From assembly GCF_044704955.1 (NCBI RefSeq), contig NC_091999.1:59210001-59274000 (forward strand): a stretch of 64,000 nt of DNA. Reading direction: 5' to 3'. A program made the translations under genes and the position numbers. Of the stretch, positions 22,460-62,954 are shown piece by piece. Each line of letters starts with the position of its first letter. Position 1 is the stretch's first letter. Under the pieces are notes generated by a model. The model did no database searches. It was not told where the DNA came from and worked only from the letters and a program-made list of their open reading frames with translations. This DNA is from Pristiophorus japonicus. Taxonomy: Eukaryota.

Positions 22460-22589
22460 CTTATTACTCTATAATTAACAAATAGTCAAAGGAAAAATGG
22501 CCATATGGCTTGCTTGAAGAATCTCTCGCTGTCAATCTTTAAATAGACAAACAACAACAACTAATATGTGTGCTAAACGGCTGGTTCAA

Positions 22590-35289: not shown

Positions 35290-36700
35290 ATCGTAGGAAC
35301 ATAAGCACATAAGAAATAGGAGCAGGTTCAGGCTAGCTGGCCCTTCGAGCCTGCTCCATCATTTAACGACATCATAGCTGATCTGATCATAGACTGAGCT
35401 CTATTTCCCTGCCCGCTCCCATAACCATTCATTCCCTTATCGCTCAAAAATATGTGTATCTCCGCCTTAAATGTATTCAATGACCCGGCCTCCACAGCTC
35501 GCTAGGACAGCGAATTCCACAGATTTACAATCCTCTGAGGGAAGAAATTCCTCCTCATCTCAGTTTAAAATGGGCAGCTCCTTATTCTAGGACTATGTCC
35601 CCAAGTTTTATTTTCCCTGATGAGTGCAAATATACTCTCGACATCCACCTTGCGAGCCCCACATTACCTTATACATTTCGATAAGATCCCCTCTCATTGT
35701 TCTTAACCCCAATACGTATAGGTCCAATATAGTCAACTTATCTTCATAATTCATCCCCCTCATGTCCGGAATCAACTTAGTGAGCCTTCTCTCAACAGCC
35801 TCCAATGCACGTATATCCTTTCTTAAATATGGAGACCAAAAATGTACGCAGTGCACCAGGTGTGGCCTCACCAATACCACGTACGAGCCTTCTTTGCTTT
35901 TATACTTTTTCCCCCTTGCAATAAAGGCAAGAATTCCATTTGCCTTCCTGATTAATTGTAGCACCTGCAAACTAACTTTTTGTGTTTCATGCACAAGGAC
36001 ATACAGGTCTCTCTGTCTTGCAGCACTTTGCAATTTTTCTCCATTTAAATTCAAATTTGCTTTTCTACTTTTTCTGCCAAAGTGGATAACCTCACATTTT
36101 CCCACATTATACTCCATCTGCCAAATTTTTGCACACTCATTTAGCCTGTCTATGTCCCTTTGCAGCTATTTTGTGTCCTCCTCACAATTTGCTTTCTGTC
36201 AATCTTTTTATCATCAGCAAACTTGGCTACATTACACGCTGTCCCTTCATCCATGTCATTAACATAGATTGTAAAATTTGAGGACACAGCACCGATCCTT
36301 GCGGCACCACACTAGTCACTGTTTGCCAACCGGAAAATGACACATTTATCCCGACTCTCTGTTTTCTGTCAGTTAGCCAAAGCTCTATCCATGCTAATAC
36401 ATTAGCCCCAACCCCGTGAACTTTTATCTTGTGCAGGGACCTTTTGTGTGGCACCTAATCGATTGGAAATCCACATATACCACATCCACTGGTTCTCCAT
36501 TATCCACCCTGATCGTTACATCCTCAACAAACACAAGCAAATTTGTCAAACATGAGTTCTTTTTAATAAAACCTTTGCTTGATTTAATTATGCATATCCA
36601 AATATCCCGCTACTGCTTCCTTAATAATGGAGTCCAGCATTTTCCCAACGACAGATGTTAGGCTAACTTGTCTATAGTTTCCAATTTTTGCCTTTCTCCT
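35290..36700 (-). mobile_element. CR1 LINE 3' part
   Basis: MEYNVGKCEVIHFG, LVRPHLVHCVHFWSPY, VPQGSVL. Confidence 0.92.
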
Positions 36701-36709
36701 TTATAAAAT

Positions 36710-37390
36710 CGGGACAGGATCTCGTGTAATTAAAACAGAGATAGCGTATTGGGTAAATTAAACGGTGACAATGTCTCGTGTAATATAAACAGAAACAGGG
36801 TCCAGTGTAATATAAACCGAGACAGGATCTAGTGCAATATAAACACAGACAGGATCTGGTGTATAATAAACAGAGACAGGGTCTCGTGTAATATATAAAG
36901 ACAGATGGTCTCGTCTAATATAACAGATACAGAGTCTAGTGTAATATAAATAGAGACAGGGTCTAGTGTAATATATAACGAGACATGGTTTAGGATAATA
37001 TAAACAGAGACATGGTCTAGCCTGATATAAATAGAGACACGGTCTAGTGTAATATAAACAGAGACATGGTCTAGTCTGATATAAATAGAGACACGGTCTA
37101 GTGTAATATAAACAGAGATAGGGTCTAATGTAATGTATACAGAGACATGATATATAAATAGAGTTAGGGTCTAGTATATTATATACAGAGAGAGGGTCTA
37201 GTGTAGAATAAGCAGAGACAGGGTCTAGTGTAATATAAACAGAGATAGGGTATAGTGCAATATAAACAGAACCAGCGTCTGGTGCAATATAAACAGTGAC
37301 AGTATCGAGTGTGATATAAACAGAGAGAGGGCTAATGTAATATTAATAGTGACAGGGTCTAGTGTAATATAAACAGAGACATAGTGTAGT
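36710..37390. repeat. 27-bp minisatellite
   Basis: Tandem units. Confidence 0.9.
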
Positions 37391-38089
37391 GGAGTAATAA
37401 CTGAGAAACAATCTGCTGTGATTTCATAGTGTCACAGACAATTATGGCATAAAGAAAGCCATTCGTTCCATCACGCCTCTGCTGGCTCTGAGTGAAAACA
37501 AATTCTGCTCTTCTCCTGCTAATGCTTTTAAATATAGGACCTCTGCTTAGTGAGAGCCGATACACTATATCATAGAATCTTAGAAATTTACAGTACGGAA
37601 GGAAGCCATTTCAGTCCTTTGTACAGTGCCAGCCGACCAAGAGCTATCCTGCCTAATTCCACTTTCGAGCTCATGTTCTGTAGCCTGTAGGTTACGACAC
37701 GTTAATTGAACATCCAAGTATCGTTTAAATATGGTGAGGATTCCTGCCTCAATCAATATTTCATGCAGTGCGTTTCAGACACCCACCACCCTCTCGGTGA
37801 AGACATGTCCCCTTATATCTCCTCTACATTATAAAAACAAGTTAGCATGTTGAAGACATCTATTAGGTCGCTAATTAAACTTCTCTGTTACAAGGAGAAA
37901 AGTTCTAACTTTTGAACGCTCTAATTGAAGCCTCTCATCCCTGGTAACAACACGTTAAACCTCTTCCGTACCCTTTCTAGTGTCTGTACATCGTTATGGA
38001 AATGTGGTGCCCAAAATTGTCCATAATATTCCATGTGAAATCTAAGGCCAAATATAAGCAGATATAAGTTGCAACAGATTAATAACTGA

Positions 38090-38832
38090 GCCAGCGTCCA
38101 GAGTGATTTAAATAGAGACTGGGTCTAGTGCAAGATAAACAGTGATAGGCTCCTGTGTAACATATAAAGAGATAGGTTCCAGTGTAATATAAAGTGAGAT
38201 ATGGACGAGTGTAACATAAACAATGACAGGGTCTAGTTTAATATAAACAGAGATAGGGTCGTGCAATATAAACTGAGAAAGGATCTAGTGTAATATAAAC
38301 TGAGACAGGGTCTAGTGTAATGTAAACAGAGACAGGGTCTATGTTAATATAAACAGCGACAGAGTCGAGTGTAATGTAAACAGAGACAGGATCTAGTGTA
38401 ATATAAACTGAGACAGGGTCTAGTGTAATATAAACAGAGACATGTTCTAGTGCAATATAAACAGAAACAGGGCCTGCTTTACAATAAACAGAGGCAATGT
38501 CTAGTATAATATAAAGAGACATAGGGTCTAGTGTAATATAATCAGAGACAGTGTCGAGTGTATTCTAAACAGTGACTGGGTCTAGTGTAATATAAACAGA
38601 GACAGCGTCGAGTGTAATATAAAGAGAGACAGGGTCTCGTGTAATATAAACAGAAACAGGGCCTAGTGTAATATAAAGAGAGACAGGGTCTCGTGTAATA
38701 TAAACAGAGACAGGGTCTAGTGTAATGTAAACAGGGACAGGGTCTCGTGTAATATACACAGAGACAGGGTCTAGTGTGATGTAAGCAGGGACAGGGTCTA
38801 GTGTAATCTCAGCAGAAACAGGGTCTAGTGAA
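38090..38832. repeat. 27-bp minisatellite
   Basis: Tandem units; translates as (VYITLDPVS)n. Confidence 0.92.
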
Positions 38833-40509: not shown

Positions 40510-41000
40510 TCCTGAGTGTTTGATGGGACTCTGTAAAGGGAACTTTACTCTGCATCTAACCCCGTGCAGTACCTGCCCTGGAAGTGATTGATGGGACGGT
40601 TTCGAGGTAGCTTTGCTCTGCATAGACCAGTGATGTACCTGCCTTGAGAGAGTTTAATGGGACAGTGTAGAGCGGGCTTTACTCTGTAGCTAACCCATGC
40701 TATATCTCCCCTGGGAGTGTTTGCTGGGACAGTGTGGAGGGAGCTTTACTCTGTATAGACCAGTGCTGTACTTGCCCTGGGAGAGTTTGATGGGACGGTG
40801 TAGAGCAAGCTTTACTCTCTATCTAAACCGTGCTGTACCTGCCCTGGGAGTGTTTGATGTGACGGTGTTGAGGGACGTTTACTGTTTCTCGAATCGTGCT
40901 ATACCTGAGCTGGGAGTGTTTGATGGGACAGAATCAAGGGAGCTTTTCTCTGTATAGATTCGCGCTGTACCTGCCCTGGGAATGTTTGATGGCACAGTGT
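40510..41000. repeat. ~67-bp tandem repeat array
   Basis: About 7 units of ctgtacctgccctgggagtgtttgatgggacagtg. Confidence 0.88.
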
Positions 41001-41239: not shown

Positions 41240-42200
41240 CCAGTGCAGTAATAACCGAGACAGGTCCAATTGTAACATAGACAGAGTGAGGATATAGTGA
41301 CAAGGTCCAGTGTAAAATAAACAGACACAGCGTCTAGTGTAATATAAACAGAGACAGTGTCTAGCGTAACTTAAACAGAGACAGGGTCTAGTGTAATATA
41401 AACAGAGACCGTGTCTAGTGTAATATAGAAAATACAGGGTCTCGTGTAATATAAACAGAGACAGGGTCTAGTGTAGTATAAAAAATACAGGGTCTAGTGT
41501 AATATAAACAGAGACAGTCTCTAGTGTAATATAAACAGAGACAGTGTCTAGTGTAATATAAAAAATACAGGGTCTAGTATAATAGAAACAGAGGCAGGTT
41601 CGAGTGCAATATAAATAGAGACAGGGTCTAGTGTAATATAAATAGAGACAAGGTCTAGTGTAATATAAACAGAGAAAGGACCAATCTACCAATCTATTAT
41701 AAAGAGACAGGAGATAGTATAATATAAAGAGTGACAGTGTCTAACATAATATAATAAAGGATATCGTGCTCTAATAATAACTAATACATGATCTATTGTA
41801 TTAGAAACATTGACATTTTCTAGTGCAATATAAACTGAGACAGAGTCTAGTGTAATATAAGGAGAGACAGGGACTAGTTAAATATTGACAGAAACAAGGG
41901 GTACGGTAATATAAACAGAGACAGCGTCTAGTTCAGTAGTAACTGAGACAGGTTCTAATGTATTATAACGGAGGGTCTAGAAATGTGATAACTGATACAG
42001 AGCCTAGCATAATAAAAAGAGACCATGTCTAGTGCAGTGTAACTGAGACAAGATCTACAGTAATAAAATAGAGCCCAAGACGAGTGCAGTAATAGCTGAG
42101 ACAGGGCCTTGGGCAATCTGAATAGAGAGATGGTCGAGTGCAGTTATAATTAACCAGGGTCTAGAGTAATTTAAACATATAGAATGTCTAGAGTAATTTG
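41240..42200 (+). repeat. 27-bp minisatellite, forward orientation
   Basis: agtgtaatataaacagagacagggtct units. Confidence 0.9.
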
Positions 42201-42344: not shown

Positions 42345-43245
42345 ATATTACACTGGACCCTGTCTCTGTTTATATTACACTGGACTCAGTCTCTGTTTAT
42401 ATTACACCAGAGCCTGTCTCTGTATAAATTACCCGAGTCCCTGTCTCTGTTTATATTACACAAGACTCTGTCTCTGTTTATATTGTACTAGACCCAGCCT
42501 CTGTTTATATTACACTAGACCCTGTCCCAGTTTATATTACACTAGACCCTGTCTCTGTTTATATTACACTAGAGCCAGTCTCTGTTTATATTACCCGAGT
42601 CCGTGTCTCTGTTTATATTACACAAGACCCTGTCTCTGTTTATATTGTACTAGACCCAGTCTCTGTTTATATTACAGTAGACCCTGTCCCTGTTTATAGT
42701 ACACTAGACCCTGTCCCAGTTTATATTACACTAGACCCTGTCTCTGTTTATACTACACTAGACCCTGTCCCAGTTTATATTACACTAGACCCTGTCTCTG
42801 TTTATATTGCACGAGACCCTGTATCTGCTTATATTACACTGGACAGTGTCTCTGTTTATATTAAATTATAACCTATCTCTGTTTATATTACACTAGACCC
42901 TGCCTCTGTTTATATTAAACTAGACCCTGCTCTGTTTATATTACAGTAGACCCTGTCTCTGTTTATATTCTTTCAGACACTATCCCTGTTTATATTACAC
43001 TAGACCCTGTCTCTGTTTATATTACACTGGACCCTGTCTCTGTTTATATTACACTAGACCCTGTCTCTCTATATATTCTTCCAGACACTATCCCTGTTTA
43101 TTTTACACTCGACCCTGTCTCTGTTTACATTACAGTAGATTCTGTCTCAGTTTATATTACAGGAAACCCTGTCTCTTTTTATATTACGCCAGGCACTGTC
43201 TCTGTTTATATTATCCTCGACACTCTCTCTCATTTTATTACACCA
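42345..43245 (-). repeat. 27-bp minisatellite, reverse orientation
   Basis: agaccctgtctctgtttatattacact units. Confidence 0.92.
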
Positions 43246-44019
43246 GATCATCTTTCCTTTTCAAATACATATTGATTTCCCTATTTGAAAGTTATGATTG
43301 AATTTGCTGCCATAACCCTTTCAAGCACTACATTCCAGGTTATTACAACTCGCTGCATAAAAAATCTCCTTATCTCCCTTCTTTTATTTATTTTATCAAT
43401 CACCTTAATATTTGTCCTCTGCTTACCGATAGACCTGCCGATGGAAACCCTACTTTAATATCAACTCTATGAAACCCCTTCACAATTTTAATTCCCCCCG
43501 AAGCATTCCCTCCTATAATAAGAATAATCCCATCCTCTCTCGTCTCCACATAACTGAACTCCCTCATGCCTTGTAGCAATCTCCTCTGCATCCTTAGCAA
43601 GAGCCTGACAATCTTCCTAAAATATGGATTGAAATAAATGCAATCATTATTTGCCCTTCAGATTATTTCTAAGGATACATGCTCCCTTCAAATTTGACTG
43701 ACTGAGAAGCATTAATTATATTGTTTTACTTGTTTTGACAATGCAGACGGTGACTGAAATGCTCAGCAACATCCGTCTCCACATGACTCATGTATCAATA
43801 TGATCACTGTCGCCACCTGCTGATAAACGATATCTACTGCAAGCCCCAGAGCTTACTTGAAACATGATTCATAATTCCAACCACAATAACTTGCTTGAAC
43901 GTTTACCCAGAGGATATTTTTTAGAGCAAACCACTAGAGGTGCAGATGATCAGAAAGTATCAAGGGCGGAATATCAAAATTATTGTTGCAAATTCACCTT
44001 CAAGCCATCACACAGAGCC

Positions 44020-44800: not shown

Positions 44801-45784
44801 GGGTGGGGGGGTGGTGCTGACCTGTGAGGAGAGATTGAGTATGTAATGTCCATATTTACGAGAAAATCAGAACATAAGAACATAAGAATTGGGAGCAGGA
44901 TTAGGCCATACGGTGCCTCGAGCCTGTTCTGTCATTCAACGAGATCATGGCTGATCTTCTGCCTCAACTGCACTTCCCTGCACTATCCACATATCTGAAT
45001 GGAAACAAATGCAGGGCTTCGGGGAAAGGGCGGGGAATTGGGTCAATTATACAAAGTACTTCAAGTGTGGTCTAACCAAGTTTAGCATAAGTTTTGCACT
45101 TTTAGTTTTCTATCCCTCTCGAAATAAACCCGAGTTCAAGTATTCTTCTTTTTATGGAATTATTAACCTGCGTCGCAAGTTTTAGTGATGTGTGTATTTG
45201 CACTCTCAGAGACCTTTGTTCCTCCATCCTACTTAGATTCTTATTTTAAACGTGATAAGTGACCTCTTTATTTTTCTTACCAAAATGTAATACCCCATTA
45301 TTTTCTGTGTTGAAATTAATTAGTCAATTCATGTATTCTTGTAATTCGTTGAAGTGTTCCACAGTATTTACACCCCGACACGCCGGCCCCACGTGCATTC
45401 GGAAATGTAGAAGTTGTGTTTTTGACTCCAAAATCTAAATTGTTAATATAAGTTGTGAACAATAGTGGACCCAGCACTGATCCTTNNNNNNNNNNNNNNN
45501 NNNNNNNNNNNNNNNNNNNNNNNNNNNNNNNNNNNNNNNNNNNNNNNNNNNNNNNNNNNNNNNNNNNNNNNNNNNNNNNNNNNNNNNNNNNNNNNNNNNN
45601 NNNNNNNNNNNNNNNNNNNNNNNNNNNNNNNNNNNNNNNNNNNNNNNNNNNNNNNNNNNNNNNNNNNNNNNNNNNNNNNNNNNNNNNNNNNNNNNNNNNN
45701 NNNNNNNNNNNNNNNNNNNNNNNNNNNNNNNNNNNNNNNNNNNNNNNNNNNNNNNNNNNNNNNNNNNNNNNNNNNNNNNNNNNN

Positions 45785-46592
45785 ATTTATTTATCTATCT
45801 CTTTCTCTCCCTCTCTCTCTATCTATCTATCTATCTAGCTATCTATCTATCTAGCTATATATCAATCTANNNNNNNNNNNNNNNNNNNNNNNNNNNNNNN
45901 NNNNNNNNNNNNNNNNNNNNNNNNNNNNNNNNNNNNNNNNNNNNNNNNNNNNNNNNNNNNNNNNNNNNNNNNNNNNNNNNNNNNNNNNNNNNNNNNNNNN
46001 NNNNNNNNNNNNNNNNNNNNNNNNNNNNNNNNNNNNNNNNNNNNNNNNNNNNNNNNNNNNNNNNNNNNNNNNNNNNNNNNNNNNNNNNNNNNNNNNNNNN
46101 NNNNNNNNNNNNNNNNNNNNNNNNNNNNNNNNNNNNNTTTATGTATCTATCTCTTTCTCTCCCTCTCTCTCTATCTATCTATCTATCTAGCTATCTATCT
46201 ATCTAGCTATATATCAATCTATCNNNNNNNNNNNNNNNNNNNNNNNNNNNNNNNNNNNNNNNNNNNNNNNNNNNNNNNNNNNNNNNNNNNNNNNNNNNNN
46301 NNNNNNNNNNNNNNNNNNNNNNNNNNNNNNNNNNNNNNNNNNNNNNNNNNNNNNNNNNNNNNNNNNNNNNNNNNNNNNNNNNNNNNNNNNNNNNNNNNNN
46401 NNNNNNNNNNNNNNNNNNNNNNNNNNNNNNNNNNNNNNNNNNNNNNNNNNNNNNNNNNNNNNNNNNNNNNNNNNNNNNNNNNNNNNNNNNNNNNNNNNNN
46501 NNNNNNTTCTCTCCCTCTCTCTCTATCTATCTATCTATCTAGCTATCTATCTATCTAGCTATATATCAATCTATCTAGCTAGCTAGCTATGA

Positions 46593-46650: not shown

Positions 46651-48192
46651 TGCAGGGTTATGTGCGGTACTGATACTCCAGCTGACTGCTGCTATTGACA
46701 TGGTTTCTGAGACATTGGATATATTTCCTTTCCTGGGATATGGGAACATTTACACAACGAAAAAATTAAACTTAACTCCAGTACTGTTACTGGGTAGATG
46801 TGTATATAAATAAGTATTTTGACAATGTGAAGGTTTTGAAGTTGGCTTCCCGGCATGCGGTCAGTAGTGAGAAAACTGTCCTTTGATGGACTGCACAGAA
46901 ACCCACATGCTTCCTGTAAATGACACTGGTGTTCGAGGCTCGCTGACGGTAGTCAGTTAGGTTACTGCCAAATATTGTGTGGGTCAGATTAGCGTGAACA
47001 AGAATGGGAGAAAGATGGTATTTAACTATTTGAACATTAAATTATTCAGTCGAACTTTTAAAATAAGAAGCATTTTACATGGTATAACATCTCAAGAATG
47101 ATTTTCCATAAATTCCATTCTCGCCATATAATAAGATAAGATCGGAAATAATGAATTGATCCACACGGTATCTAAGGAAAACTATTTCCAAATAAAGACC
47201 ATTCTAGACCATTCAGTCACTTTATTCAGTACAGTATGAAGTGCTGGAGAGAGGTTTAATGGCCTCACCCCACACTGTAATGAGATGAGTGGGATTCGCA
47301 AAGTAAATAAAACAGGTTGAATTGCCTTGAATATTCTCACAGAGAAGTGCCAGCTGCATTTCTTTAATATTCTCACAGAATTTTGCGCCTGGTCTAAACT
47401 AATGTCTCTATTATTCCTGATTGGTAGCCGCGCAGTGTGCGGTGTAATTTGCGCTGATTTGGATCCCTGAACACCCCCTCTCATAGCCCGGTTACCATTG
47501 GGTGGTGCAATGCCCAGATTGTGATTTGTTTCTGCTGGAGATGAAGCATTTATTCCTGTGATATTCTGTAACATACCGTTATGTCCTGATACACCGAATT
47601 CCTGTTACCCGTGTCTGTTACACAGTCGGTCGCTATTAAAGTTAGCTGCAAGGATTTGGATGTCGAGGTTTGCTGATCACATTATCGGTTCTGATTCACA
47701 AGCTTCTCTCATAAAACGCAGGTCTGAAGCGGACGGGCCCCATATTATTATGTGTCTCCGTCAACTCACTCCTTTATCATCAGTCAAGCGGACTTATTTT
47801 AAAGCTAATTTTACAAACAGCTGTCTTAGGGTCACAGACTCAGGGGCAGTTAGTGAAATGCAATGAGAGACAATTGCGTAATGTGAGGAGCAAGATCTCA
47901 TCTCCAGACCAAAAGTGTAGCTTTAGCCACGTACACCGTAAATCGAATCACATTACCCATCTCTCGCACTCGGTTAAATAGAGTGATAACAATTCAGATT
48001 ATAGGGGATACTTTATTGGTACAGATGCATGGATAGTTAGCGGGAGATCGAGAAACACAAACTGGCAGTGTCTTTGGACCCTGATAATATAATTCAATCT
48101 CAGAGATTCACAACCCCTGTGAAACAGTGAGTAAATAAAGGGATTTAATTTACAGTCCAGATGTGAGTCCATTCTGTTGGTGATGCGGAAGG

Positions 48193-48275
48193 AGTGATGT
48201 GGATCCAGAAACCGCCCCTATCTGGGCATCAATGGGCGGCGCCAGTGACCTCGCCCCCATCTCCCGGGTATTTAA
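48193..48275 (+). promoter_or_regulatory. IgH V promoter: CRE/decamer-like motifs and TATA-like box
   Basis: AGTGATGTGG 48193-48202, AGTGACCTCG 48244-48253, TATTTAA 48269-48275, ~95 nt before the ATG; no ATGCAAAT octamer seen here. Confidence 0.6.
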
Positions 48276-48367
48276 CTGCCGGTCACTGGGACTGCAATAT
48301 AACAGTCTGGGAGTGTGTTTGCTCAGTGAGTTCTTGCCGGAACCATTCACCACACATTGCCAGGAGG

Positions 48368-48413
48368 ATGAGGTTGGCGATTTCTCTCAGTCTGTTGCTG
48401 GCTTTCTTTTCCC
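48368..48413 (+). CDS. IGHV: IgH V leader exon ([15 protein letters not shown])
   Basis: 46-nt hydrophobic exon, donor C|gtgagt, phase 1; 127-nt intron ending ttttacag at 48540. Confidence 0.95.
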
Positions 48414-48540
48414 GTGAGTAGTTTTTATTGTGCAATCTCTCACTGTTACTGTCTCAGTATTAGTTTCTCTCTGGAATGTTACAGCGTCAGGAATCATTTC
48501 ACCAGGATTGATCCTCTGGGGTTTTTGATTATTTTTACAG

Positions 48541-48858
48541 GTGTCCACTCGGATGTGGTGTTGATTCAGCCCGAGGCAGAGACCAGGATTCCCGGAGGCT
48601 CCCTGAGACTGACCTGTCAATCCAGCGGCTTCGATCTTGGTGGTAGCTACATGTACTGGATCCGCCAGGTTCCCAGACAGGGGCTGGAGTGGCTGGTTAC
48701 CTATTACAGTCCATCGAGCAAGTATTATGCCTCAGGGATTGAGAGCCGATTTACTGCGTCCAAAGACACTTCAAACAACATCTTCACGTTGGACATGAAG
48801 AATCTGAGGAGCGAAGACAACGCCATCTATTTCTGTGCAAGGGACTACAGCAATGGAT
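48541..48858 (+). CDS. IGHV: IgM heavy-chain V exon with fused D-like 3' extension (VD)
   Basis: [52 protein letters not shown] then DYSNG; open frame, canonical C-W-C. Confidence 0.96.
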
Positions 48859-48896
48859 CACGGTGCTATCCAGACCGAGCTCTCCATACAAAAACC
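48859..48896 (+). other. Recombination signal sequence, 22-nt spacer
   Basis: CACGGTG + 22 nt + perfect ACAAAAACC. Confidence 0.95.
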
Positions 48897-49212
48897 CCAG
48901 ACAGGGAGTTTGCTCAAAACTGTGATCGCTACCACACCAGGAGCGTCGAAGGAACTGAAGCTTAAATAAAAATAATGAGTGGAAGTAAGATATATATATA
49001 TATTTAAATGTATTACATTTGTCTGCTTTATTAATGGTGATTGCCATGCTGAATCTGCACAGAGGCTTCAGAAGTATTCCAATCATTGTTATAAATATAA
49101 TGAACGGTACAAACTGAAATATCTCACTGATTCACTCTTAGGGGTGTCGGAATCATGTTTTTAGAGCTGGGTGCAATTTAATCTCTGTATTTTATAGTTT
49201 ACAGTCCACCGG

Positions 49213-49240
49213 AGTATTTGACATGACATATCTCACTGTG
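49213..49240 (-). other. Recombination signal sequence, 12-nt spacer
   Basis: AGTATTTGA (6/9 to GGTTTTTGT) + 12 nt + perfect CACTGTG; no nonamer at 22 or 23 nt. Confidence 0.85.
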
Positions 49241-49288
49241 ACGCTACGGGCTACTGGGGACAAGGGACCATGGTGACGGTGACTGCAG
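49241..49288 (+). CDS. IGHJ: IgH J segment with D-like 5' prefix (DJ): ATGYWGQGTMVTVTA
   Basis: WGQG motif, donor G|gtaagg, phase 1. Confidence 0.95.
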
Positions 49289-51269
49289 GTAAGGAACATT
49301 CACTCATTCAAAAACTGTTGTATTTGTGTCTTTATTTTATATTTCTGTTCATTTTAATAATGATTTCGTTCACTGAAACTTGGGTCCGGTGGATTTTGTT
49401 TTGAGATTTTTTGCAACGCTCAATGTGATTCTGCTGCAAAATGATTATAGAATTCAACAGTTTCTCCACAGAAAATGTTGTTGATGTGATTTGGTGTTTA
49501 TTCGCTGACGACTGTGTGCCTGGTTACTTTAAATACTTTATGGTTGTTACACTGTTTGACGTTTCTGCAATGTTTAATCTCGGTGACCTATGATTGTTGC
49601 AGTTTTTCTGATCGAATGCAAACATTGTGTTTAAATCTATTTAAAGGAACATTGTAGGCACAAAACAGAAAGCTTAGCGATCAATAAATAATCTTCAGGA
49701 ATTGAATGCTTTTTATTGAAAATTACATTGTCATCTACTGAGCGAATGTTCCCGAAAGTTTAGATTCAATATGTGAAGCGTTACTGTAATTAAGAACTGA
49801 ACAATTAACACATTTCCAGCCGGAACAGATTTAAATTAATATTACTAACATTATTATAATGCAGTAATATCACCAATTATTATTAAATATGCTATAATAT
49901 CAACATTAATGTATTTAACAGTCTAAACACAATTCTGCTGAAAGTATTTTAAATTTCTGTTGAATTCAATCATTAGTTATTTCAGTGTTAGGCGGGTTCG
50001 GTGATTCTGTAATGAGATTTTTTGCAAGGATACATTTGATTCTGCTGGAAGTGTTTATAGAGTGAAGGGTCTGCTCCATGAAAGGTTCTGTCGAGGGATT
50101 CGACCCCTCAGTGATGTGATTTAGTGTTGATCTGCTGAGGAGAGTTTGTGCCTGTGTCACTCAGAATACCTAGAATTTGTGAAACCGTTTGGCGTTTCTA
50201 CAATGTTTAATAAATATTGGGTGTTGTTTGTTAAAACTTTCACTAAACTAATCTTGAACACTTTGCAAGACCAAAACCTGTCTCTCAATAACAAATTTCG
50301 CTGTATTAGTAAGGCTGAAATTCAGGCACATTAAGTTAATTTCAAATGTTGCAGGTAAGTGTGCTTCTGAGGAGGAAGGGCCAGACAGGCACTCAGATTA
50401 TTTTCAATAATCATCTAACATGAACATTAATTAGAATGTAACATCAGTGATCATTTATTAAACACAAACGATCCCTTACAATTGCGTTGCATACTGGTCC
50501 GTATTATAGTTATTGCAAAACCTCAATGGTTGGAGAGAATGTTTAATTAATTCCAAAATTAATTTATAAATCAATGCATTTATAACCCGGCTGTGCTGAG
50601 TTCGATAAGGTGCCGCTGCAGATTTTGGTGAATTAACTTCCTGTTTTGCCTCGATGATTTTACAGGTTATATTTACTGATGAAAATATATCAAATCAGTG
50701 GGTGGTCAGATTTCAATGTAGATGTCTCCTGGATTGTGACATTCTTATTCTGTCACCGAGTCCCGTGACGGCAGCAAATTCCCGTGGAATGTGAATTATT
50801 TCCAGATACTTGCTTTCAGGGGAGTTAATTTTTACACGGTTTCCAAGAAAGTTGACAGAGATGGAAAAATGGCTGGATTCTGAAGAGTCTCTCAAATTAA
50901 TATCAGTTTAATTTCAAAGAATCTGCGGAGTTGAGGTGGTTGGAAATTGACAAGAAATAAATTAGAAATCAAGCAGCTTCATTGAAATTAACAGATTGAA
51001 CTGGTCTCTCTGCCTGGAGCACCGTTTGTGTCTGTTCTGTTTCTGTGCGCCTGCTCACTGTGTGAGAATCAGGAGTCCTCCTGACCGGTTGTAAACCTTC
51101 TGGATTGTGATTCTGTATTGCGGGGAGTGTCATTTAACTCAGTTATTTAAGAAACTGGTATATGTGAGAAACGTAAAAGTTTGACTTTAAAGTTGATGAG
51201 TCGCCGCAGAAATGAGATCAGTTACCCAGAGTGTGACAGTCAGAAGAAACAGTTCCGAAACACCATGGG

Positions 51270-51780
51270 GGGACAGTAGAAGGAGCTTTAATCAGTTTCC
51301 AACCCAGTTGTACATGCCCTGGGAGTGTTTGATGGGACAGTGCAGAAGGAGCTGTACTCTGTATCTAGCCCATGCTGTACGTGCCCTGGGAGTGTTTGAA
51401 TGGACAGTGTAGAGGGCGCTTTACTCTGTATCTAACCCCATGCTGTACGTGCTCTGGGCGTGTTTGATGGGACAATGTAGAGGGAGCTTTACTCTGTATC
51501 TGACCCATTCTGTACCTGCTCTGGGCATGTTTGATGGGACAATGTAGAGGGAGCTTTACTCTGTATCTTGACCCATGCTGTATCTGCTCTGGAAGTGTTT
51601 GATGGGACAGTGTAGAGGGAGTGTTACTCTGTATCTGACCCATGCTGTACCTGCTCTGGAGGTGTTTGATGGGACAATGTAGAGGGAGCTTTACGCTGTA
51701 TCTTGACCCATGCTGTACCTGCCCTGTTTGGATTGATGGCACAGTGCAGAAATAATTTTACTCGGAATCTAAACCTTGCT
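51270..51780. repeat. ~67-bp tandem repeat in the J-C intron
   Basis: Period 67-68 nt; further units at 52100-52460. Confidence 0.9.
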
Positions 51781-53554
51781 ATATTTGGCCCGTCTTACGG
51801 GGTAGTGTAGTTTAATATGCATTCATCCTTTGCTTTACATGACCTTACAGCGCCAGACAGATCAGTGAAGAGAGAGATTTACTCTATCGAATCTATCCTG
51901 TATCTGATTTGAGTGATTTTCTAAAAATATTGAAGAAACTTCAATCTGCATCTAACTAATAAGATATCGAATTAGTAATGGTTATACAGTTGAGCATCAG
52001 ATAATTATTGAATGAGATTGGTGTGATCCGAAGCTCACTTTCAGAACAAACAGCGCCTCGTCTGATCTGATGGGTGCTCCAATTTATTTTGGCAATTTTG
52101 GACCTGCACTGGGGCTGTTTGATGGGACATTGTAGAGGGAGATTTATTCTGTATCTAACCCATGCTGTACCTGCCCTGGGAATGTTTAATGGGACACTGT
52201 AGAGGGAGCTTTACTCTGTACCTGTATTGGGAGTGTTTGATGGGACAGTGTAGAGGAAGCTTTATTCTTTATCCAAGCCTGACTGTACCTGCCCTGAGTG
52301 TGTTTAATTGGCAATGTGGAGGGAAATCTACTTTTTATCTAACTCGTGCCGTACCTACCCTGGGAGTGTTTGATATGACAGTGATGAAGGAGCTTTACTC
52401 TGCAACTAACCCGTACTTTACTTTATCTGGCAGTGCTTGATGGGACATTGCAGAGATTGCTTTAATCAGTATTTAAACTTTTATTTACAAAGACGTGGAG
52501 CTTAATTGGGTCCTTCAATATAGATTGATCTTCTATTTAATCAGAGCTATAGGTGAGCTGGTGCGCTTTACAGGGGCAGTGTATGGTAAGCTTGTCTTTA
52601 TACATGTGATAATTGTGCTGAATCTAATCGGTCAATTTGATAACGCATTTTATGGAGAGACATTTCGTAGCACATCTCTGCAGTACTTGAGCTGGGAATG
52701 TTTGACGGGATAGTACAGATAACGTACTACTCTGTGTGCAACCCTTGCTATACCTGTCATGACCCACACGACAGCATAGCGGGAGCTTTGCTCTCATATC
52801 TCTGCTGTATCTGACCTGAGAGTGCTTGGTCAGGCAATGTTCAAGATACCGCTAGCTGCGACTAACAAATAGCAGATAAACTACTCGTGACAGATATACA
52901 CAATAAATCGTCCGATTGACCAGATTAAACAACGCACATTCATTGATGTTTATATTCTTTCTGAAAAAATGCCAAATTTTTAATGAGTTATTAATGTTTG
53001 AACATTTTGAGCATCAGATTACTATTGAACACGATTGGCCTGATCCTCAGCTCACTTCCAGAACAAACTGTTTCAGGAAGTGAATAACGCTCCAGAAAGC
53101 AGCGCCTGTTCTGATCTGTTGGGAGGCTGTAAGTTATTTTCACAATTTAAATGGAGGATATCAAGACTCCCACTTGAATTAATCGTCATGAGGACCTCAT
53201 GTTTAGAAACATTATGTTGTTCAATTCTTCCTGAAAAGGTTAAAGGCAGGGACAAACTATGAGAGATGCAGCTATTGGCCTGGATCACAACACAAGGCGC
53301 ACAGTCACTGAGCTGCAATTCTGTGAAACATTTAAAGAGATAGAGTCAACCTGCAATAAGTCATCATTCGCAATGAATTTTAAGCCTTTATAGCAGCATG
53401 CGATTGACTAATTTGCGTCAGATTTATAAGATCTCTTTATTTTAAATATCCTCTTTAATTACAACAAACAATAAAAATAGATCTGGTAGAGGTGTCCAAA
53501 ATATGAAGCGTTTCCTTCCATTAAATCTAGTAGAACTATTCCCACTGACTCGTG

Positions 53555-54485
53555 TAGAATGATAGCATCTCACAGCACTGAAAAGGCCATTCAGGCATCG
53601 TGCCTATGCCGGCTCTGAAAGAGCTGTCCAATTTAGTCCAACTCCCCAGGGTTTTCCTTCTAAACGTGCCACTGAGTCCTCCTGACGTACAGGAGGAACT
53701 GCCTGGAGCATTCCTGAAATTACCAACCCTCTGTGTGAAAAAATTACCCCAATTTCCCCTTTTGATCTTTTGCCAATTATTTTAAATTTGTGACCTTTGG
53801 TTACCCACCTACTTTCCAGCGGAAGCAGTTTCTCCCTACTTGCTCTATCAAAACCTGTCATCATGTTGAATATCTCTCTTAAGTCTCCTCTTAACCTCTG
53901 CTCCAAGGAGAACATCCCAGCTTCTCCAATCTATCCACATAACTGAAGACCCCATCCCTGGCATCATCCTGGTAAAAGCTTCCCCTCTACACTCCCCAAT
54001 GGCTTGACATCCTTCCTAAATTGTTGTTCCAGAATTGTGCACAATACCCCAGCTGAGGCCTAACACGTGATCTGTAAGTTTAGCATAACCGTCTTATTTT
54101 TGTAGTCAATGGCCCATTTACAAAGTCATGTATCCCATACGCTTTCATAACTGTCTTACCAGTTTGCCCTGCCCCCTTCAAAGATTTTTGAATATGTTCA
54201 TCTAGATTTCTCTGTTCGTGCATCCCCTCAAAACAATACTATTTAGATTATACTGCTTATCCATCTTCCACCCAATGTGCATCGCTTCTCAATGATTCGC
54301 ATTAAATTGCAATTGCCATGTCCCGGCGCATTTCACTGGTCCATCTGTCTCCTCATGGAGTCTGCTGCTTTCATGCTCACTATTGGCTACGTTGCCAGGT
54401 TTTGCATCACCTTCGAACTTCGAAATTGTATTCCCTATAACCAAGTCCAGGGCATTGTGATATAACAAGAACAACAATGGGAACT
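53555..54485 (-). mobile_element. Old CR1 3' fragment in the J-C intron
   Basis: FSLEQRLRGDLRE, GHKFKIIGKR, TISKFEGDAK. Confidence 0.82.
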
Positions 54486-55235
54486 GAAATGGGCCATTTA
54501 AGGAGAAACTTCCAATTAACCGGATTTTGGAATGGTATTTTATTCGGATTATTAATTGAGTGGCAGGGAGGAGGAAACTCAAGAGACATGCATTCAATGG
54601 GATGGGATAGAGCCCAGATCACAGTGCACTGAGGGACATCGGTCTCCATCAAATGCTGAGAAAATGAGGGAGAAATTCGACTCAATCGCAATTCACCGAC
54701 AGCTTGAATCTTAGAAACTTAACTATGGAAATGCTACCTGTTGAATTATGTGGTATGCAAATTTAGAGGGTTTTTTGCTAACGTCCGAAGCAGGAATTCC
54801 GCTGTTACTTTGAAGTGCAGTCACTGTTGTTTTGTAGGGATACGCCGCAGGCAATGTGCACAGAGCAAATTTCCCCAAACTGCAATTAAATAAAGGACCA
54901 GAAATGGTGCTGATTGAGAAATAAATGGAGGCCGAAATAACAGGAACACGTCTCTGTTCTTCTATTGTATGATCCAATGAAGGATTCTTTATTGACGAGT
55001 TGTGTAAATGTTCTTGTTGTGTAATGTGATAGAGCTCGGGGATAGAGAGGTGTGTTCCTTACCAGGGCATCGACAGGTCCTTATGATGGAACTGACAGAA
55101 ACTCAAATGCCCGTGTAGTCTTTGATGGGGAAATGGTGGAATTAGTTTATTCTGCAGTCAAATTTCGAGCTGTTTATTTCTTTTATAAGCACGGATTACA
55201 GAGTCTAACTTGTTCAATGGGCCATTCTTTCCCAG

Positions 55236-55535
55236 TAACACCGTCTCCCCCCACCCTCTACGCCCTGCTCTCCTCCTGTGAACAACCCAGTACCGATGGC
55301 TCCATCACGTACGGCTGTTTGGCGATGGACTACTCCCCCGACATCACCAGCCTTTCCTGGAAGAAAGATAAAGAGCCAATCACCACTGGATTGAATACCT
55401 ACCCGTCAGTGCTCAACAAGAAGGGAATCTACACCCAGAGCAGCCAGTTAACCATCGCCGAGTCAGATATGGGGAGCAGCACAATCTACTGCGAGGTTCG
55501 ACGTGGTGTGTCGGTCTGGGCCATCACAATGCTAG
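55236..55535 (+). CDS. IGHM: IgM constant exon CH1
   Basis: cccag|..[39 protein letters not shown]..|gttagt; 300 nt, phase 1-1. Confidence 0.96.
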
Positions 55536-55611
55536 GTTAGTGATGTGGATTACAGGGCAAACAATGATAAGGTGAGAAATTATGTTCAACTTGTAGAGAA
55601 ATTTGGTTAGA

Positions 55612-56365
55612 CAACACTTAGAGTACTGTGTACAGTTCTGCTCTCCATATCATACTTAGAATACTGTGTACAGTTCTCGTCTCCAAATCACACTTAGAGT
55701 ATTGTGTACAATTCTGCTCTCCCTATCATACTTCTAATATTGTGTACAGTTCTGGTCTCCATATTACACTTAGAGTATTGTATACAGTTCTGGTTTCCAT
55801 ATAATAATTAGAATACTGTGCACAGTTCTAGTCTCCTTATCACATTTAGAATATTGTTCACAATTCAGGTTTCCATCTCATACTTAGAATACTGTCGAAA
55901 GTTAGCTCTCCACATCATACTTAAAATATTATGCACAGTTCCGGTCTCCATATCACAGTTAGAATACTGTACACAGTTCTGTTCTCCATATCACGCTTAG
56001 AATATTGCTTAAAGTTCTGGTTTCCATCTCATACTTAGAATACAGTGTAAAGTTCTGGTCTCCATATCATACTGAGAATAGTGTGCATAGTTCTGGTCTC
56101 CATATTACACTTAGAATAGTATGCATAGTTCTGTTCTCCATATCACACTTAGAATATTGCTTAAAGTTCTGGTTTCCATCTCATACTTAGAATACAGTGT
56201 AAAGTTCTGGTCTCCATATCATACTGAGAATAGTGTGCATAGTTCTGGTCTCCATATCACACTTAGAATATTGTGCATGGTTCTGGTCCGCATATCGCAC
56301 TTAGAATATTATGCACAGTTCCGGTCTGCATATTAAACTGAGAATACTGTGCACAGTTCTGCTCT
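55612..56365 (+). repeat. 38-bp minisatellite derived from the CR1 RT motif HLEYCVQFWSPY
   Basis: ~20 units of cacttagaatactgtgtacagttctggtctccatatca. Confidence 0.88.
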
Positions 56366-56484
56366 CTGTAAATGCCAGGTTAGTGTTCGTCTGACAGCAA
56401 AGAACCTGTTAAAATATAAGGACGCTTTGCATTTCTTAATCAATTATTTTCTAAGCAATGTCAATAATATGTTTTTTTTTGAAG

Positions 56485-56802
56485 ATCCTGAACCGGACAT
56501 CGTTCCTCCAACTGTTCTCCTCACGCTGAGTTCCACTGAACAAATCACCAGCAGCAGATATGCAAGCGCCGTGTGTTCAATCATCGATTTCAGGCCAAAA
56601 TCACTGACCGTGAATTGGCTGAAGAGTGGACAACTCATGGATTCGGGCATCATCACCTCTCCCGTCTTTGAGGTGAACGGGAACTTCTTGACGGCCAGTC
56701 GGCTGACAGTCCCCGCCGAGGAATGGTTCACCGGCTCGGTCTACACCTGCCAGGTCACTCATGAAGGGGTCACGCAAAACCGTAACTTCAGCAGATCTCA
56801 GG
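56485..56802 (+). CDS. IGHM: IgM constant exon CH2
   Basis: tttgaag|..[30 protein letters not shown]..|gtaaga; 318 nt, phase 1-1. Confidence 0.95.
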
Positions 56803-56919
56803 GTAAGAGACACAATCCCGGGAGGTTGCACACCATTCTGAGCGCTGACCTCAGTAAGGATTTTATTGGAATTAGTAAAAAGCAGAGGACTGTTCCTAAT
56901 TTCCAATCATGCAGTTTGT

Positions 56920-57370
56920 GTATTCTTGCGATACAAACTTGCCTTTATACAGCGCCTTCAGCGACCACAGACTGAACCAAAACGCTTGCCAGCCAATGAA
57001 TTAAGTTGTGAAATGTGGTCACAGTTGTAATGTACAAAGTACGGCAGTCATTTAGTGCACAGCAAGCTCCCACAAACAGCAGTGTGATAATGACCATTTG
57101 TTTTTGTTGAGTGATATTTCTTGAGGGATAAATATTCCCAGGCCACCAGGGAGAACTCCTCTGCTTTTCATTGAAATAATGCCAGAGTATCGTTTACCTC
57201 CACCTGAGAGGCCAGACGGATCCTCGGTTTAACACCTGATCCGACAGACGGCAACTCCGATAGTGCGCCATGCCCCCAGTACTGCACTGGGAGACTCAGC
57301 TTACATTTTGTGATCAAATATCTGGAGTGGAAATTCAATCCAGGATCTTCTGGTTCAGGATTCCTCATTG
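56920..57370 (-). mobile_element. Deu-domain SINE (SacSINE1-like)
   Basis: Reverse complement of the SINE core (gcacagcaagctcccacaaacagc). Confidence 0.78.
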
Positions 57371-57569
57371 CTCAGGATTTATTAACCTCGCCAAAGAAGC
57401 TTTCCCCTTGCTCTGATGTCAGGCAGTGAGTGAAGTGTCCTTAGTCTCAGGTTTATCCTGAGTTGGCTGATCATATACGGAGCGGCTGTCGGAGTCTGGA
57501 ACCCTTTCCTGCCAACTGTCCAGGAATCCTGCTAGAATGGGCATCTACCCTATTCAGAGCACTGAGCTC

Positions 57570-58065
57570 AATTCTCGGCTCCGCACCACAGGAAGGATAT
57601 ACATGGAGGCGCTAAACTGCAGGTTTACCCGAATTAAACCGGGGCTAATAATGTAAAATGATCAGTCGACGAGTATAAAACGTTAAGAGATGATCCAATT
57701 GACGTGTTTAAGTTGATAAATGGAATTGATCGAGTAGATATACAACATTTATTTAGTTTGATGAAAGAGTCGAGAACAAGTAGCAGAAACTTAACATTAG
57801 AGTTAGGCCGTGCAGAGGTGATGTCAGAAAGGATTTTCTCACAAGAAGAATATTGCAAGTCGGGATTTCCCTCCCCAAAAGCTGCTGACACTTGCTTTCA
57901 ATTGAAAAGTTGAAAATTGAGATTTATAGATTTTTGTCAGGCAAGGTTATCAAGGGTTACATAACCAATGCGTGAAGATGGTGTTGAGTGTTCATCAGCC
58001 ATGATCTAACTGGTTGGCGAGACAGGATGGATGGACTGAATGCCCTCCTCCTGTTCCTATGTTGC
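57570..58065 (+). mobile_element. Old CR1 3' fragment
   Basis: FKLINGIDRVD; cagccatgatcta 3' UTR. Confidence 0.7.
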
Positions 58066-58761
58066 TATTAATGCCCTGAGGTCATATTTCTCTCTGAATC
58101 TCTCTCACCAGACATGATAAATGTTCAGTAATTACAGAAATTAACAAGCGACCTCACATCATTCCAAATGATGCCGCACCACAAAGATTCCTTGGAACTC
58201 CATTCTCCCGAACTTGCACTTCTCCTCTGACGGGGGCTGTGACTGGTTCCTGCACATTTTCACTGCAACAAAAAACGCAGCAAGAGACCAGAAACTTAAC
58301 TTTGTTTCCTGTTGTCCCATAAATCCTGAAATTAATTTGACACTGGTTTTGAACCAGTATAATGTCTGGTGTAGACCTCTTGAACTTCGGGCTTTTCGGG
58401 CTTCAGCTATTATAACCAACGGTGATGCATTTGGGTGCAAGGATCTATGGACGGGCTTAAAGGAGCAAGGGATTTCAGGAAGAGCGCTATTCCATGCCTA
58501 ACACAATGTATTCCGATTTTATGCCGGGTATTTGCTTCACAGCCCATTACAGGTGGCTCTGGCTGCAAATACACAAGAAATGTTACAGATCTCTCGGAAT
58601 CGTTGCCAATTCATTGTCCTTCCAATAACGCCGGTGTTGAGGCAACAGCGAGAGGTTGATATCTCAAAAGTGATATATTCCCCTTGAAAGATTTAAGGCT
58701 AAATATTGGTGTCCGGATTCTGAAGCTTCAGCTTTTCCTGACTTTCATTCCTGTTTCGCAG

Positions 58762-59070
58762 TGGATGTCCCATGCAGCGATTCAAAAATCACTCTTCGCC
58801 CACCGTCATTGGAACAGGTCTTACTGGAGGCGATGGTGACCTTAACCTGCGTCGTGTCTGAGGCTCCTTATGGGCTCACCGTGACCTGGACCCGGGAAAA
58901 GGAGGCTTTGAAATCAGAGATTGCCTTCCAGCCGGGAGAGGATCCCAACATAGTGATCAGCAACTTAAACATCTCGACACAAGACTGGCTGAGTGGGGAT
59001 AAGTTCTACTGCGTGGTGAGCCATCAGGATATGCCGACTCCTCTCAGAGATTCCATCCACAAGGAAAAGG
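58762..59070 (+). CDS. IGHM: IgM constant exon CH3
   Basis: tcgcag|..[39 protein letters not shown]..|gtgagc; 309 nt, phase 1-1. Confidence 0.96.
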
Positions 59071-59989
59071 GTGAGCGGGGAGATTGTTGCAATAAGTGAG
59101 ATACTGTGACTATTTCCAGTGCATGTGCAAGGGACAATTCATTATATAAAGTGTTTAATGGGCTGCTCTGATCATTCAGTTTGGTAATTCCACGAACTCA
59201 GCACTCTGGGACCTGACATTATGTATTTTAGGGGAAACTGGACAAGTCCATGAGTGAGAAAGGAATAGAAGGGTATGTTATTAGGAATAGATTAAGTGAG
59301 CTAGGAGGAGGCTTGTGTGAAACATACACACCGGCATAGACCAGTTGGCCAAATCTCCTCATTCTGTGCAGTAAATTCTATGTAATTTTCCAGACCAACC
59401 CTTGGAGATTTCAGAGAGAAAGATTGTGTTCCCTCTGCTGCGGGATGGAAAACCAGAGAGGCCCCAGAGGGGAAAATGAAAAGCTTTAAAATTCAACGCA
59501 GTGTCCATTTCTCTCACATCTAACCACCTGAAATTGGCTGAATTTAAATGAGGAAGGCGAGTTGTGGGCGGTGGTCTCACAGGCCACCCGGAAGAACGGG
59601 AGGATTGGAAGCCGAGTCAGGAGGTCTCGGATCGCGGGGGCTGGGTTACACAGGGACCCTGGATCCAGGAGGTAGGTGTATGGGCAATTACCACCTGGGT
59701 GCAGCAGTCCCCGCCTCGCTGTAACTGCAGGGATTTACACAGTGTGTCAAACCGGACCAGCGACAGTTAAACACCAAATGGTGGTTAAAATAGAAGATTC
59801 CAGTCCCATTTAAATATTTTACTCAAATATAATATTACAACCGGGAGTGGGCGCGTTGACGTCGGGATTCCTATTTTTAACAATTTAAAAACCTCCACGC
59901 CCAAAACCCGCCTGCTGTATTGATTTAAAGTTTTCCCATTGTCTCTGGAACTGTCCAGTTCATTGGCCTTTATTGTAACTGTTCCACAG

Positions 59990-60381
59990 CGAAAGATCCG
60001 CGGGAACCGGCCGTGTCTGTCCTCCTGCCCTCGGCAGAAGAAGTCTCCGCTCAGAGGTTGGTCAGCCTCACCTGCTTAGTGAGAGGTTTCTCCCCCCGAG
60101 AGATCTTCGTCAAATGGACCGTCAATGACAAGCCGGTGGATTCCGGCAACTACAAGAACACCGAGGTGATGGCAGAGAACGGCAGCAGATCCTTCTTCAT
60201 GTACAGCCTGCTATCCGTTGCAGCCGAGGAGTGGGCCAGCGGTGCTTCTTACTCCTGTGTGGTGGGACACGAAGCGATCCCCTTGAAGATCACCAACAGA
60301 ACCATCAATAAATCCAGCGGTAAACCCAGTTTCGTCAACATTTCCCTGGTTCTGATGGACACCGTCAATTCTTGTCAATGA
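59990..60381 (+). CDS. IGHM: IgM constant exon CH4 plus secretory tailpiece
   Basis: ccacag|..[50 protein letters not shown]; internal donor G|gtaaa at 60319/60320 for the membrane form. Confidence 0.97.
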
Positions 60382-60409
60382 GAATCTCTCGATTGCATTT
60401 CAGTTCTTA

Positions 60410-60425
60410 AATAAAAAACAATAAA
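60410..60425 (+). terminator. Secretory-form polyadenylation signals
   Basis: AATAAA at 60410 and 60420, ~30-40 nt after the stop. Confidence 0.85.
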
Positions 60426-61329
60426 GGGCTTTTTTTCCAATCGTGAGTTAAACAGGCAGCCGCTCAATTAACTATGTTTCCTAGTTTTGCCAATGTGAGG
60501 GCTGTTTGTCTGAAGTAGAGTGTTTGCGTGTCTCGGTCCCAAGGCTTATACAGCCAGCGCTCCCAGCTCAGATACACCATGGGTTAGAGACTGGGTGAAG
60601 TTCTCTCATTACAGGATTCCTGAAAGTAACTTCAGCAGAGAGAGAGTAAAGGGTAATTTTCACTCACTGTACCTCTCATACCCACCAGCGAGAGGGGAAC
60701 GGGAAATGCATAATTCTCGTAACCCCCACTGCCCCTCCCACAGGGAGATGGGAAATGAACCACTCTCTTGTAAATGCACTAAGTTGCCATCAGTACAATG
60801 TCACATTCTAACCCATGGTCAAAAGATTTTAAACTTGCCACATGATTATTATATTCTGAAATAACTATTTATTCCACGTAATATTTTTTAATTAAATAGT
60901 CCCTGTTAATTGTAAACTAACATGCTGAATTCTAATGGGCCATATCTAAACTGGTGATTGAATCCTCTGCGGGTTTCTCATAGTTGTGTCCCTGATGTTT
61001 CTGAGGCCCATCGGTTGAATTGTTGCATTCCTTCGGCTGACGTCACATTGCGCCTCACACAGGACACATTTACACAGAGCAGGGAGAATACATGTGAAAG
61101 TGAGTCTGTCTGTGTTCATATGTAAGTGTGATGATGATTTTGTATAAGTGTGTGTATTTTTGTGTAAGTGCACAATTTCACAGTAACACACATAGACTTA
61201 CATATAAAGACATACGTTAACACTCTGACACATAATATTATACATAACTCGAATATAATGAAAACCATCATTGTCAAATCCAGTTATTGGTACTCTCTGA
61301 AAATTTTAACAATAGCAATAATACACGTC

Positions 61330-62460: not shown

Positions 62461-62954
62461 TAATCCAGAACAACAGATAGTTATACAGTGATATAGACAC
62501 TAAAGAGCACAAACAAAAACGTCAGGCTATAGAAGAATGTAGAACAAAGATGCAGTTTTTGGACGGGCAAAGTATCCAATGCTTGGCCTGAATAAATAAT
62601 TACTGATACCATAATATCTAACATTTCACTATTCTGGCCTTACACATACACTGGATCAATGTAGTTGTTGCAAGCTGAAACGTTATTTATGTTCAGAGCA
62701 TTGCCGTAACATATATAAAAAAAAGGTTATAACTCACAACTAATCTCTTAAAAGCCTCCTTGGCAGCCTCCAACTAAGTAACTACCTTAACCTAGCGGAA
62801 AAATAATCGATATCCTGCTGTACACCTTCCTCGATGTTTCATCGTATTATTCCCGAATGGTAGATCGTAGCAAAGTCATCCAAAATCAATTAGCCTCTGA
62901 CATGGAAGAAAAACTATCATATTTTCCAAAACGGACTATAGGAGGATCATAATG

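Follow-up and report, generated by a model that had tools for sequence, protein, structure and literature searches.

An IgM heavy-chain minilocus with a probable germline V-D join and a full-length J segment behind a 12-spacer RSS

The DNA analysed here (the window, the whole stretch of 64,000 nucleotides) contains a complete cartilaginous-fish IgM heavy-chain cluster, at positions 48368–60381 of the + strand. This minilocus is probably rearranged in part in the genome itself: its V would be fused to a D by a germline coding join, and its J appears to be of full length and to carry an inherited RSS with a 12-base spacer. The parts of the cluster are the following.

48368–48413 (+): leader exon, ATG at 48368, 15 residues plus 1 base by translation
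48414–48540 (+): leader intron, 127 bases, GT..AG; the spliced contig X5 record 9 joins 48413 to 48541
48541–48842 (+): V proper, ending TGT GCA AGG (C-A-R); Pfam V-set, E = 1.1e-16
48843–48858 (+): 16 bases, GACTACAGCAATGGAT, between CAR and the heptamer, read as a D fused to V
48859–48896 (+): RSS with a 22-base spacer, CACGGTG / 22 / ACAAAAACC, 1 mismatch to the consensus
48897–49212 (+): intersegment DNA, AT-rich, with a (TA)n run and without an RSS-flanked segment
49213–49240 (+): RSS with a 12-base spacer, nonamer first, AGTATTTGA / 12 / CACTGTG, adjoining J
49241–49288 (+): JH, 48 bases, frame ..ATGYWGQGTMVTVTA, donor G/GTAAGG
55236–55535 (+): CH1 exon; Pfam C1-set, E = 5.2e-09; splice sites and phase checked
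56485–56802 (+): CH2 exon; Pfam C1-set, E = 3.1e-16; splice sites and phase checked
58762–59070 (+): CH3 exon; Pfam C1-set, E = 3.1e-08; splice sites and phase checked
59990–60381 (+): CH4 exon and secretory tail; Pfam C1-set, E = 1.1e-22; open to a single stop

The V exon and a JH that shows the W-G-x-G motif (frame YWGQGTMVTVTA) lie within about 2 kb, and four C1-set Cmu exons follow about 6 kb 3' of J. The five proteins found in a protein homology search with the V exon are shark VH sequences 57–69% identical to it; they include those of horn shark, cloudy catshark and whale shark, and none exceeds 69%. The leader aligns with that of horn shark. At the other end of the cluster, the secretory tail of CH4 is of the mu type, with the penultimate Cys, and CH4 has an internal donor of the membrane-form type (G/GTAAAC at 60319); no TM-like open stretch was found in 60379–64000, the window stopping 3.6 kb past CH4. 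The leader, the V-set exon and the four C1-set exons are open, and the conceptual splice from J through CH1 to CH4 keeps the phase, with a stop only at its end (Pfam was searched exon by exon, and the spliced reading frame was checked by script). An earlier reading of this DNA, made from the sequence only, had described leader, V and CH1–4 as intact, which these open exons and the in-phase splice bear out.

The heptamers of the two RSSs are separated by 382 bases, and J lies 5.9 kb from CH1. In the nurse shark miniloci the intersegment DNA measures about 400 bases, and the distance from J to Cmu1 is 6.3–6.8 kb (PMC2435157). The geometry of the cluster fits that of shark miniloci.

Upstream of the cluster, a minisatellite with a 27-base unit, about GACAGGGTCTAGTGTAATATAAACAGA, occurs as numerous arrays of 10–33 copies, in both orientations (16961–17328, 20133–20502, 25480–25770, 32041–32557, 36713–37381, 38084–38830, 41299–41968 and 42345–43247), and it yields long false open frames (..YITLDPVSV..). 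A family of 67-base tandem repeats is found at 2836–3174, 12685–12963, 40514–41000 and 51276–51726, and one array of it (6.7 copies, 87% matches) lies between J and CH1, within the intron. Switching between clusters is reported in sharks. Most of the CH1-CH2 intron is filled by some 20 tandem copies of a 38-base unit (55614–56366, higher-order period 152), and a CA-rich compound tandem repeat (periods 55–120, window 61340–61862) is found about 1 kb past the CH4 stop, where TM exons are expected.

The window also holds a retrovirus-like remnant, at about 21200–24800 on the – strand, with an RNase H domain (23883–24434, E = 6e-12) and integrase-core pieces (22881–23222) below Pfam's cut-off; that these are in separate frames indicates that the element is broken. 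One of its open reading frames, 21216–21518, has a CX6CC-like motif and no Pfam match. A LINE-type endonuclease domain (Exo_endo_phos, E = 1.4e-13) is encoded in an open frame at 63202–63999 (+) that runs off the end of the window, and reverse-transcriptase-like open frames are present at 8432–9133 (–), 17541–18002 (+) and 35611–36165 (–). There are four runs of N (5052–5306, 45486–45784, 45870–46137 and 46224–46506), the last three of which lie in a low-GC stretch (31%) 2–3 kb upstream of the cluster.

Contigs of sequencing reads were compared with the window at 85% likeness, so that paralogues were included. Sample X1 is probably the one behind the assembly, and so does not amount to independent support; X5 is another sample, for which the kind of run (RNA or DNA), the tissue and the individual are unrecorded.

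The case for the V-D join is made at the end of V. The codons TGT GCA AGG occupy 48834–48842, and 16 extra bases, at 48843–48858, separate them from a heptamer, CACGGTG (48859–48865), to which a perfect nonamer belongs (48888–48896). A consensus 22-spacer RSS with at most 2 mismatches is expected 0.03 times by chance, as judged from shuffles of the window. The germline V of horn shark terminates at CAR. In contig X5 record 9, a spliced and rearranged transcript, the V is 98% alike and the match ends exactly at 48842, to be followed by 36 other bases and then by a match to J from 49251; this divergence indicates that V proper ends at 48842. The CDR3 of the same transcript contains a D-like core, GACTGCGGGAGTGGGT, that is identical to the 16 extra bases at 11 positions, and 4 of the 5 differences are A/G transitions. 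The match is modest; 11/16 is reached in 0.4–0.6% of shuffles (p 0.004–0.006), and the reference for 48843–48858 is here the CDR3 core of a paralogue's transcript, not a free germline D; it nevertheless suggests that the 16 bases look like the D of the family. A DNA contig of X1, whose V end reads ..TATTACTGTGCAAGGAA (with AA added), matches the window from 48842 onward. It appears to be a second VD-joined paralogue with a junction longer by 3 bases, as is the case with imprecise coding joints.

The end of V thus bears bases that look D-derived together with a signal of the 22/23-spacer class, that of the 3' side of D. No DNA contig, among those listed, bridges the V-D junction (48843–48889) exactly. 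The breakpoint at 48842, the 11/16 match to D and the different junction of the second paralogue support a V fused to a D segment in the assembled genome, strongly although they fall short of proof. A germline V-D join is what the sequence-only reading had claimed, and the extra bases and the 22-spacer RSS lie where it had placed them.

The extra bases may be seen otherwise, as the long native 3' end (..AGGGACTACAGCAATGGAT) of a V family that has a 22-spacer RSS of its own, in which case the locus would be a heavy-chain gene of V and J that has no D. The 3' signals of V and of D are both of the 22/23-spacer class, so that the length of the spacer cannot by itself tell the two readings apart. 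We consider this possibility very improbable, because a V that is 98% alike departs exactly past 48842 in a rearranged transcript, because the 16 bases are similar to the D core found in the CDR3 of this transcript, and because the germline V of horn shark goes no further than CAR. The paralogue in which AGG is separated by 3 more bases from the part that matches the window from 48842 on also speaks for a coding joint, which is imprecise, rather than for a native end.

Downstream of this probable V-D join, the signal that adjoins J has a nonamer that agrees with the consensus at 6/9 positions (49213–49221), separated by a spacer of 12 bases from a perfect heptamer (49234–49240). A match as good as this one, with 3 mismatches, is expected 0.75 times by chance, so that it is not significant by itself, and its weight rests on its position at J and on its being shared by a paralogue. 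In 48897–49212, a relaxed RSS scan and a heptamer scan brought up neither a further RSS nor a further CACNGTG heptamer; the cluster has a single 12/23-compatible pair of RSSs with no RSS-flanked segment between them. It had indeed been claimed that a 12-spacer RSS stands about 380 bp further on with nothing RSS-flanked in between, and the 382 bases measured and the clean scans agree with this.

J itself reads AC GCT ACG GGC TAC TGG ..., that is, two bases and four codons before TGG. Its 48 bases are a normal length for JH. Most paralogue contigs have a T at 49247, which gives GCT ATG GGC TAC, and in an RNA contig (run X7, record 14) ..ATGGA stands directly before CTACTGG. The start of J thus seems to be of the A-M-D/G-Y type, as in paralogues and transcripts, and the likeness between these starts implies that J includes A(C/T)GG(G/A)CTAC at the least. 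In this respect the sequence-only reading, which noted a J without the usual F-D-Y start, was literally right, but there is no sign of truncation in a J of 48 bases.

Contig X5 record 11 contains ..TTATTGT, 23 bases and CACTGTG, and it aligns to 49234–49288 with 0 gaps, so that a J with a conventional RSS of about 23-base spacer is just as long between its heptamer and its splice donor. The alignment has 7 mismatches in 55 bases, one of which was read, and the first codons of that J may differ from those of this one; a J of the F-D-Y type would likewise give 7 mismatches against 49234–49288, which would weaken the argument from register. At most about 5 bases at the start of J (ACGCT) could be derived from D2, and no D2 bases leading to a trimmed J were found after the heptamer of the 12-RSS.

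The 12-RSS J is found in other copies. The multi-copy contig X1 record 7, whose depth is 114, compared with about 46–51 for the exact contigs, has the same intersegment DNA, 12-RSS and J at 89% identity, and X5 record 10 covers 49176–49280, across the 12-RSS and into J, with 1 mismatch. Being common to close paralogues, the 12-RSS J is a trait of the family rather than an event of this cluster, and the V-D fusion alone would set this type of cluster apart.

The sequence-only reading had proposed two germline coding joins in a canonical V-D1-D2-J cluster, between V and D1 and between D2 and J, the bases ACGCT.. then being the remnant of D2. It is true that a 12-spacer RSS in such an orientation precedes D2, not J, in canonical shark clusters (PMC2435157, PMC2193153), and VD1-D2J clusters have been reported in horned shark and little skate (PMC2193153). 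Moreover, no other single RAG event would place the 5' RSS of D2 beside J as simply as a coding join. We nevertheless consider a D2-J join here rather unlikely. J has exactly the 48 bases of a normal JH, and the stretch A(C/T)GG(G/A)CTAC is common to the J ends of transcripts of other clusters, which assigns it to J and not to D2; the J with a spacer of about 23 bases aligns from the heptamer onward without a gap, which leaves D2 the few bases mentioned above at most. Moreover, because the layout is common to close paralogues, a D2-J join would be an old event even if it were true, and no second join would have taken place in this cluster. In the form given, this part of the proposal is therefore not supported.

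Two further readings were tried and rejected. An unjoined V in front of a D1D2J unit does not fit, for it is the V end that has extra bases and J that has none. A deletion of 11 bases that turned a 23-base spacer into one of 12 is unlikely, as the two spacers are unlike each other.

Other RSS-like elements are present in the introns. About 100 bases past J, in the J-C intron, the element at 49391–49427 (–) has GGATTTTGT (8/9), a 21-base spacer and CAATGTG (6/7); it has the orientation of a J-type signal, and no J-like coding sequence follows it. At the corresponding site, paralogue contigs (loose ends at 49376) read GGATTCTGT, so that the stretch is shared, and the element could be due to chance, a relic or a conserved element of the intron. 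In the leader intron, a 12-spacer RSS-like match at 48420–48447 (+), AGTTTTTAT / 12 / CACTGTT, has 3 mismatches and is at chance level.

A cluster that looks partly joined could also be a somatic intermediate from a lymphocyte, and VD-DJ intermediates are documented in nurse shark B cells and thymocytes (PMC2435157), or it could be an artefact of assembly. We find either hardly credible here. Exact X1 contigs cover 48588–48762, 48889–49118 and 49089–49277, and their depths over V (51), the intersegment DNA (48) and the RSS12-J stretch (46) are equal to within a few units, and not those of a minority form; besides, a single clonal event would not dominate an assembly. The RSS12-J stretch is present in the second sample, X5, and the reads hold a paralogue that has the same layout. 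The like depths of the contigs, the X5 contig over RSS12-J and the layout shared by paralogues favour inheritance. The layout of the cluster is probably inherited and not somatic, as part of an explanation that we hold to be probable as a whole.

We propose that V was joined to the D of the cluster by a coding join of the V(D)J type in the germ line, as a result of which V would end in 16 D-derived bases and carry the 3' RSS of D, with its 22-base spacer. The layout in which J has a 12-RSS would most likely go back to an ancestral cluster in which D2 was lost. This loss may have occurred in a D2-J coding join by which D2 was almost wholly trimmed, in a RAG hybrid joint that exchanged signals, or by a deletion between two CACTGTG heptamers. 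In the present cluster the 22-RSS and the 12-RSS face each other in the deletional orientation, and a single RAG step that removes 48859–49240 would produce a complete VDJ exon, whose diversity would come from one junction only. A blunt join of V-D to J, made conceptually by script, is in frame. The claim that the gene would be completed in one RAG step follows from the 12/23 rule and from the single remaining 22/12 pair of RSSs, with nothing between them, and it stands. The anatomy, the likeness to D, the full length of J and the occurrence of the 12-RSS J in paralogues are shown, whereas the role of RAG in the germ line and the route by which D2 was lost are inferred, as would be any use that B cells make of the gene.

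Regarding the use of the gene, there are RNA contigs in which CH1-like sequence is spliced on after 49287/49288. One RNA contig is exact over J (49251–49287) and differs from the cluster at 49288 and at one base of CH1; it comes from an allele or a close paralogue and is no proof that this copy is expressed. Among the contigs listed, there is no RNA contig over 48843–49175 and no transcript that carries 48843–48858. A TATA-like element, TATTTAA, is found at 48269, 99 bases 5' of the ATG. A search of 47000–48368 for the Ig octamer (ATGCAAAT or its complement, with at most 1 mismatch) gave none except two ATTTGGAT sites, near 47457 and 47654. The heptamer CACGGTG and the nonamer on the J side, with 6/9 matches, are possible weak points of the RSS pair.

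Partly joined clusters are already known. The IgM clusters of sharks and skates may be partly joined in the germ line (VD-J, VD-DJ) or fully joined (VDJ) (PMC5192425), and VD1-D2J clusters are named for horned shark and little skate (PMC2193153). The partly joined IgH clusters of these two species (VD-J, VDD-J, VD1-D2J) likewise have V and D fused in inherited DNA and a single pair of RSSs left, in the same geometry; the comparison is with the descriptions given in reviews (PMC5192425, PMC2193153), not with junction sequences. Unlike these, the present cluster has no visible remnant of D2, and its 12-RSS is on a J of full length. The species is neither horned shark nor little skate, its V being at most 69% identical to the V of horn shark and catshark. 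On the VD side, the cluster is a further example of the known partly joined kind, and it opens no new class. The J side, to judge from its sequence, lacks the D2-J coding joint that defines the VD-DJ type, and would work like a layout that has been swapped or has no D2.

A precedent for such a swap exists in a V-D-D-J cluster of horned shark, in which a germline RAG hybrid joint exchanged 12- and 23-spacer RSSs (Kokubu et al. 1988, discussed in PMC2193153). It provides an example of an RSS with the wrong spacer placed precisely on an unaltered coding segment, like the 12-RSS on the full-length J described here. However, the hybrid joint of horned shark inverted the D1-D2 interval, whereas a swap in the present cluster would involve D2 and J. 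Such a joint would be recognised by a reciprocal exchange of the 12- and 23-RSS and by intersegment DNA that is inverted with respect to canonical clusters.

The somatic VD-DJ intermediates of nurse shark (PMC2435157) have the same layout, a VD with a 22/23-RSS that faces a 12-RSS. But they are somatic and clonal and have a true D2-J coding joint, whereas the cluster described here is at single-copy depth and recurs among paralogues. Shark Ig genes that are fully joined in the germ line are also known, and expressed: IgM1gj of nurse shark and the light chains NS4 and NS3 (PMC2193156, PMC5192425). They too arose in germ cells by joining of the V(D)J type, have a restricted repertoire and may serve early in life. 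They need no recombination, in contrast to the present cluster, in which one step remains to be made and one junction would stay diverse. A literature search on IgM clusters with one D or with a 12-RSS J returned nothing beyond PMC5192425, PMC2193153, PMC2435157 and PMC2193156.

The signals also recall the wiring of TCR-beta (V 23 / 12 D 23 / 12 J), in which J likewise has a 12-RSS and the 3' signal of D is of the 22/23 class. The likeness is one of signal layout only, the locus being here an IgM heavy-chain cluster. It would be possible to go further and to suppose that the cluster and its paralogues are a selected and expressed one-step heavy-chain gene, in which the preset VD, the J of full length and the in-frame blunt join would give a semi-invariant, innate-like CDR3, and with a 12-RSS that came from a germline hybrid joint, RAG having rewired a family of IgH clusters to TCR-beta-like signals. 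We regard this broader proposal as distinctly doubtful.

The classic evidence for an action of RAG in germ cells, by which antigen-receptor loci were reshaped, comes from the germline-joined antibody genes of sharks and rays. To these genes the present cluster adds a cleanly documented copy whose exons are all open, and it makes a narrower point, since what it has is a 12-spacer signal on a J of full length and not a visible D2-J fusion. Should this hold for the family as a whole, one would learn how RSS classes are exchanged in evolution, by a hybrid joint or by the loss of a D. The cluster would then also be a naturally occurring single-junction heavy chain, with which one may ask about its use, for example early in life.
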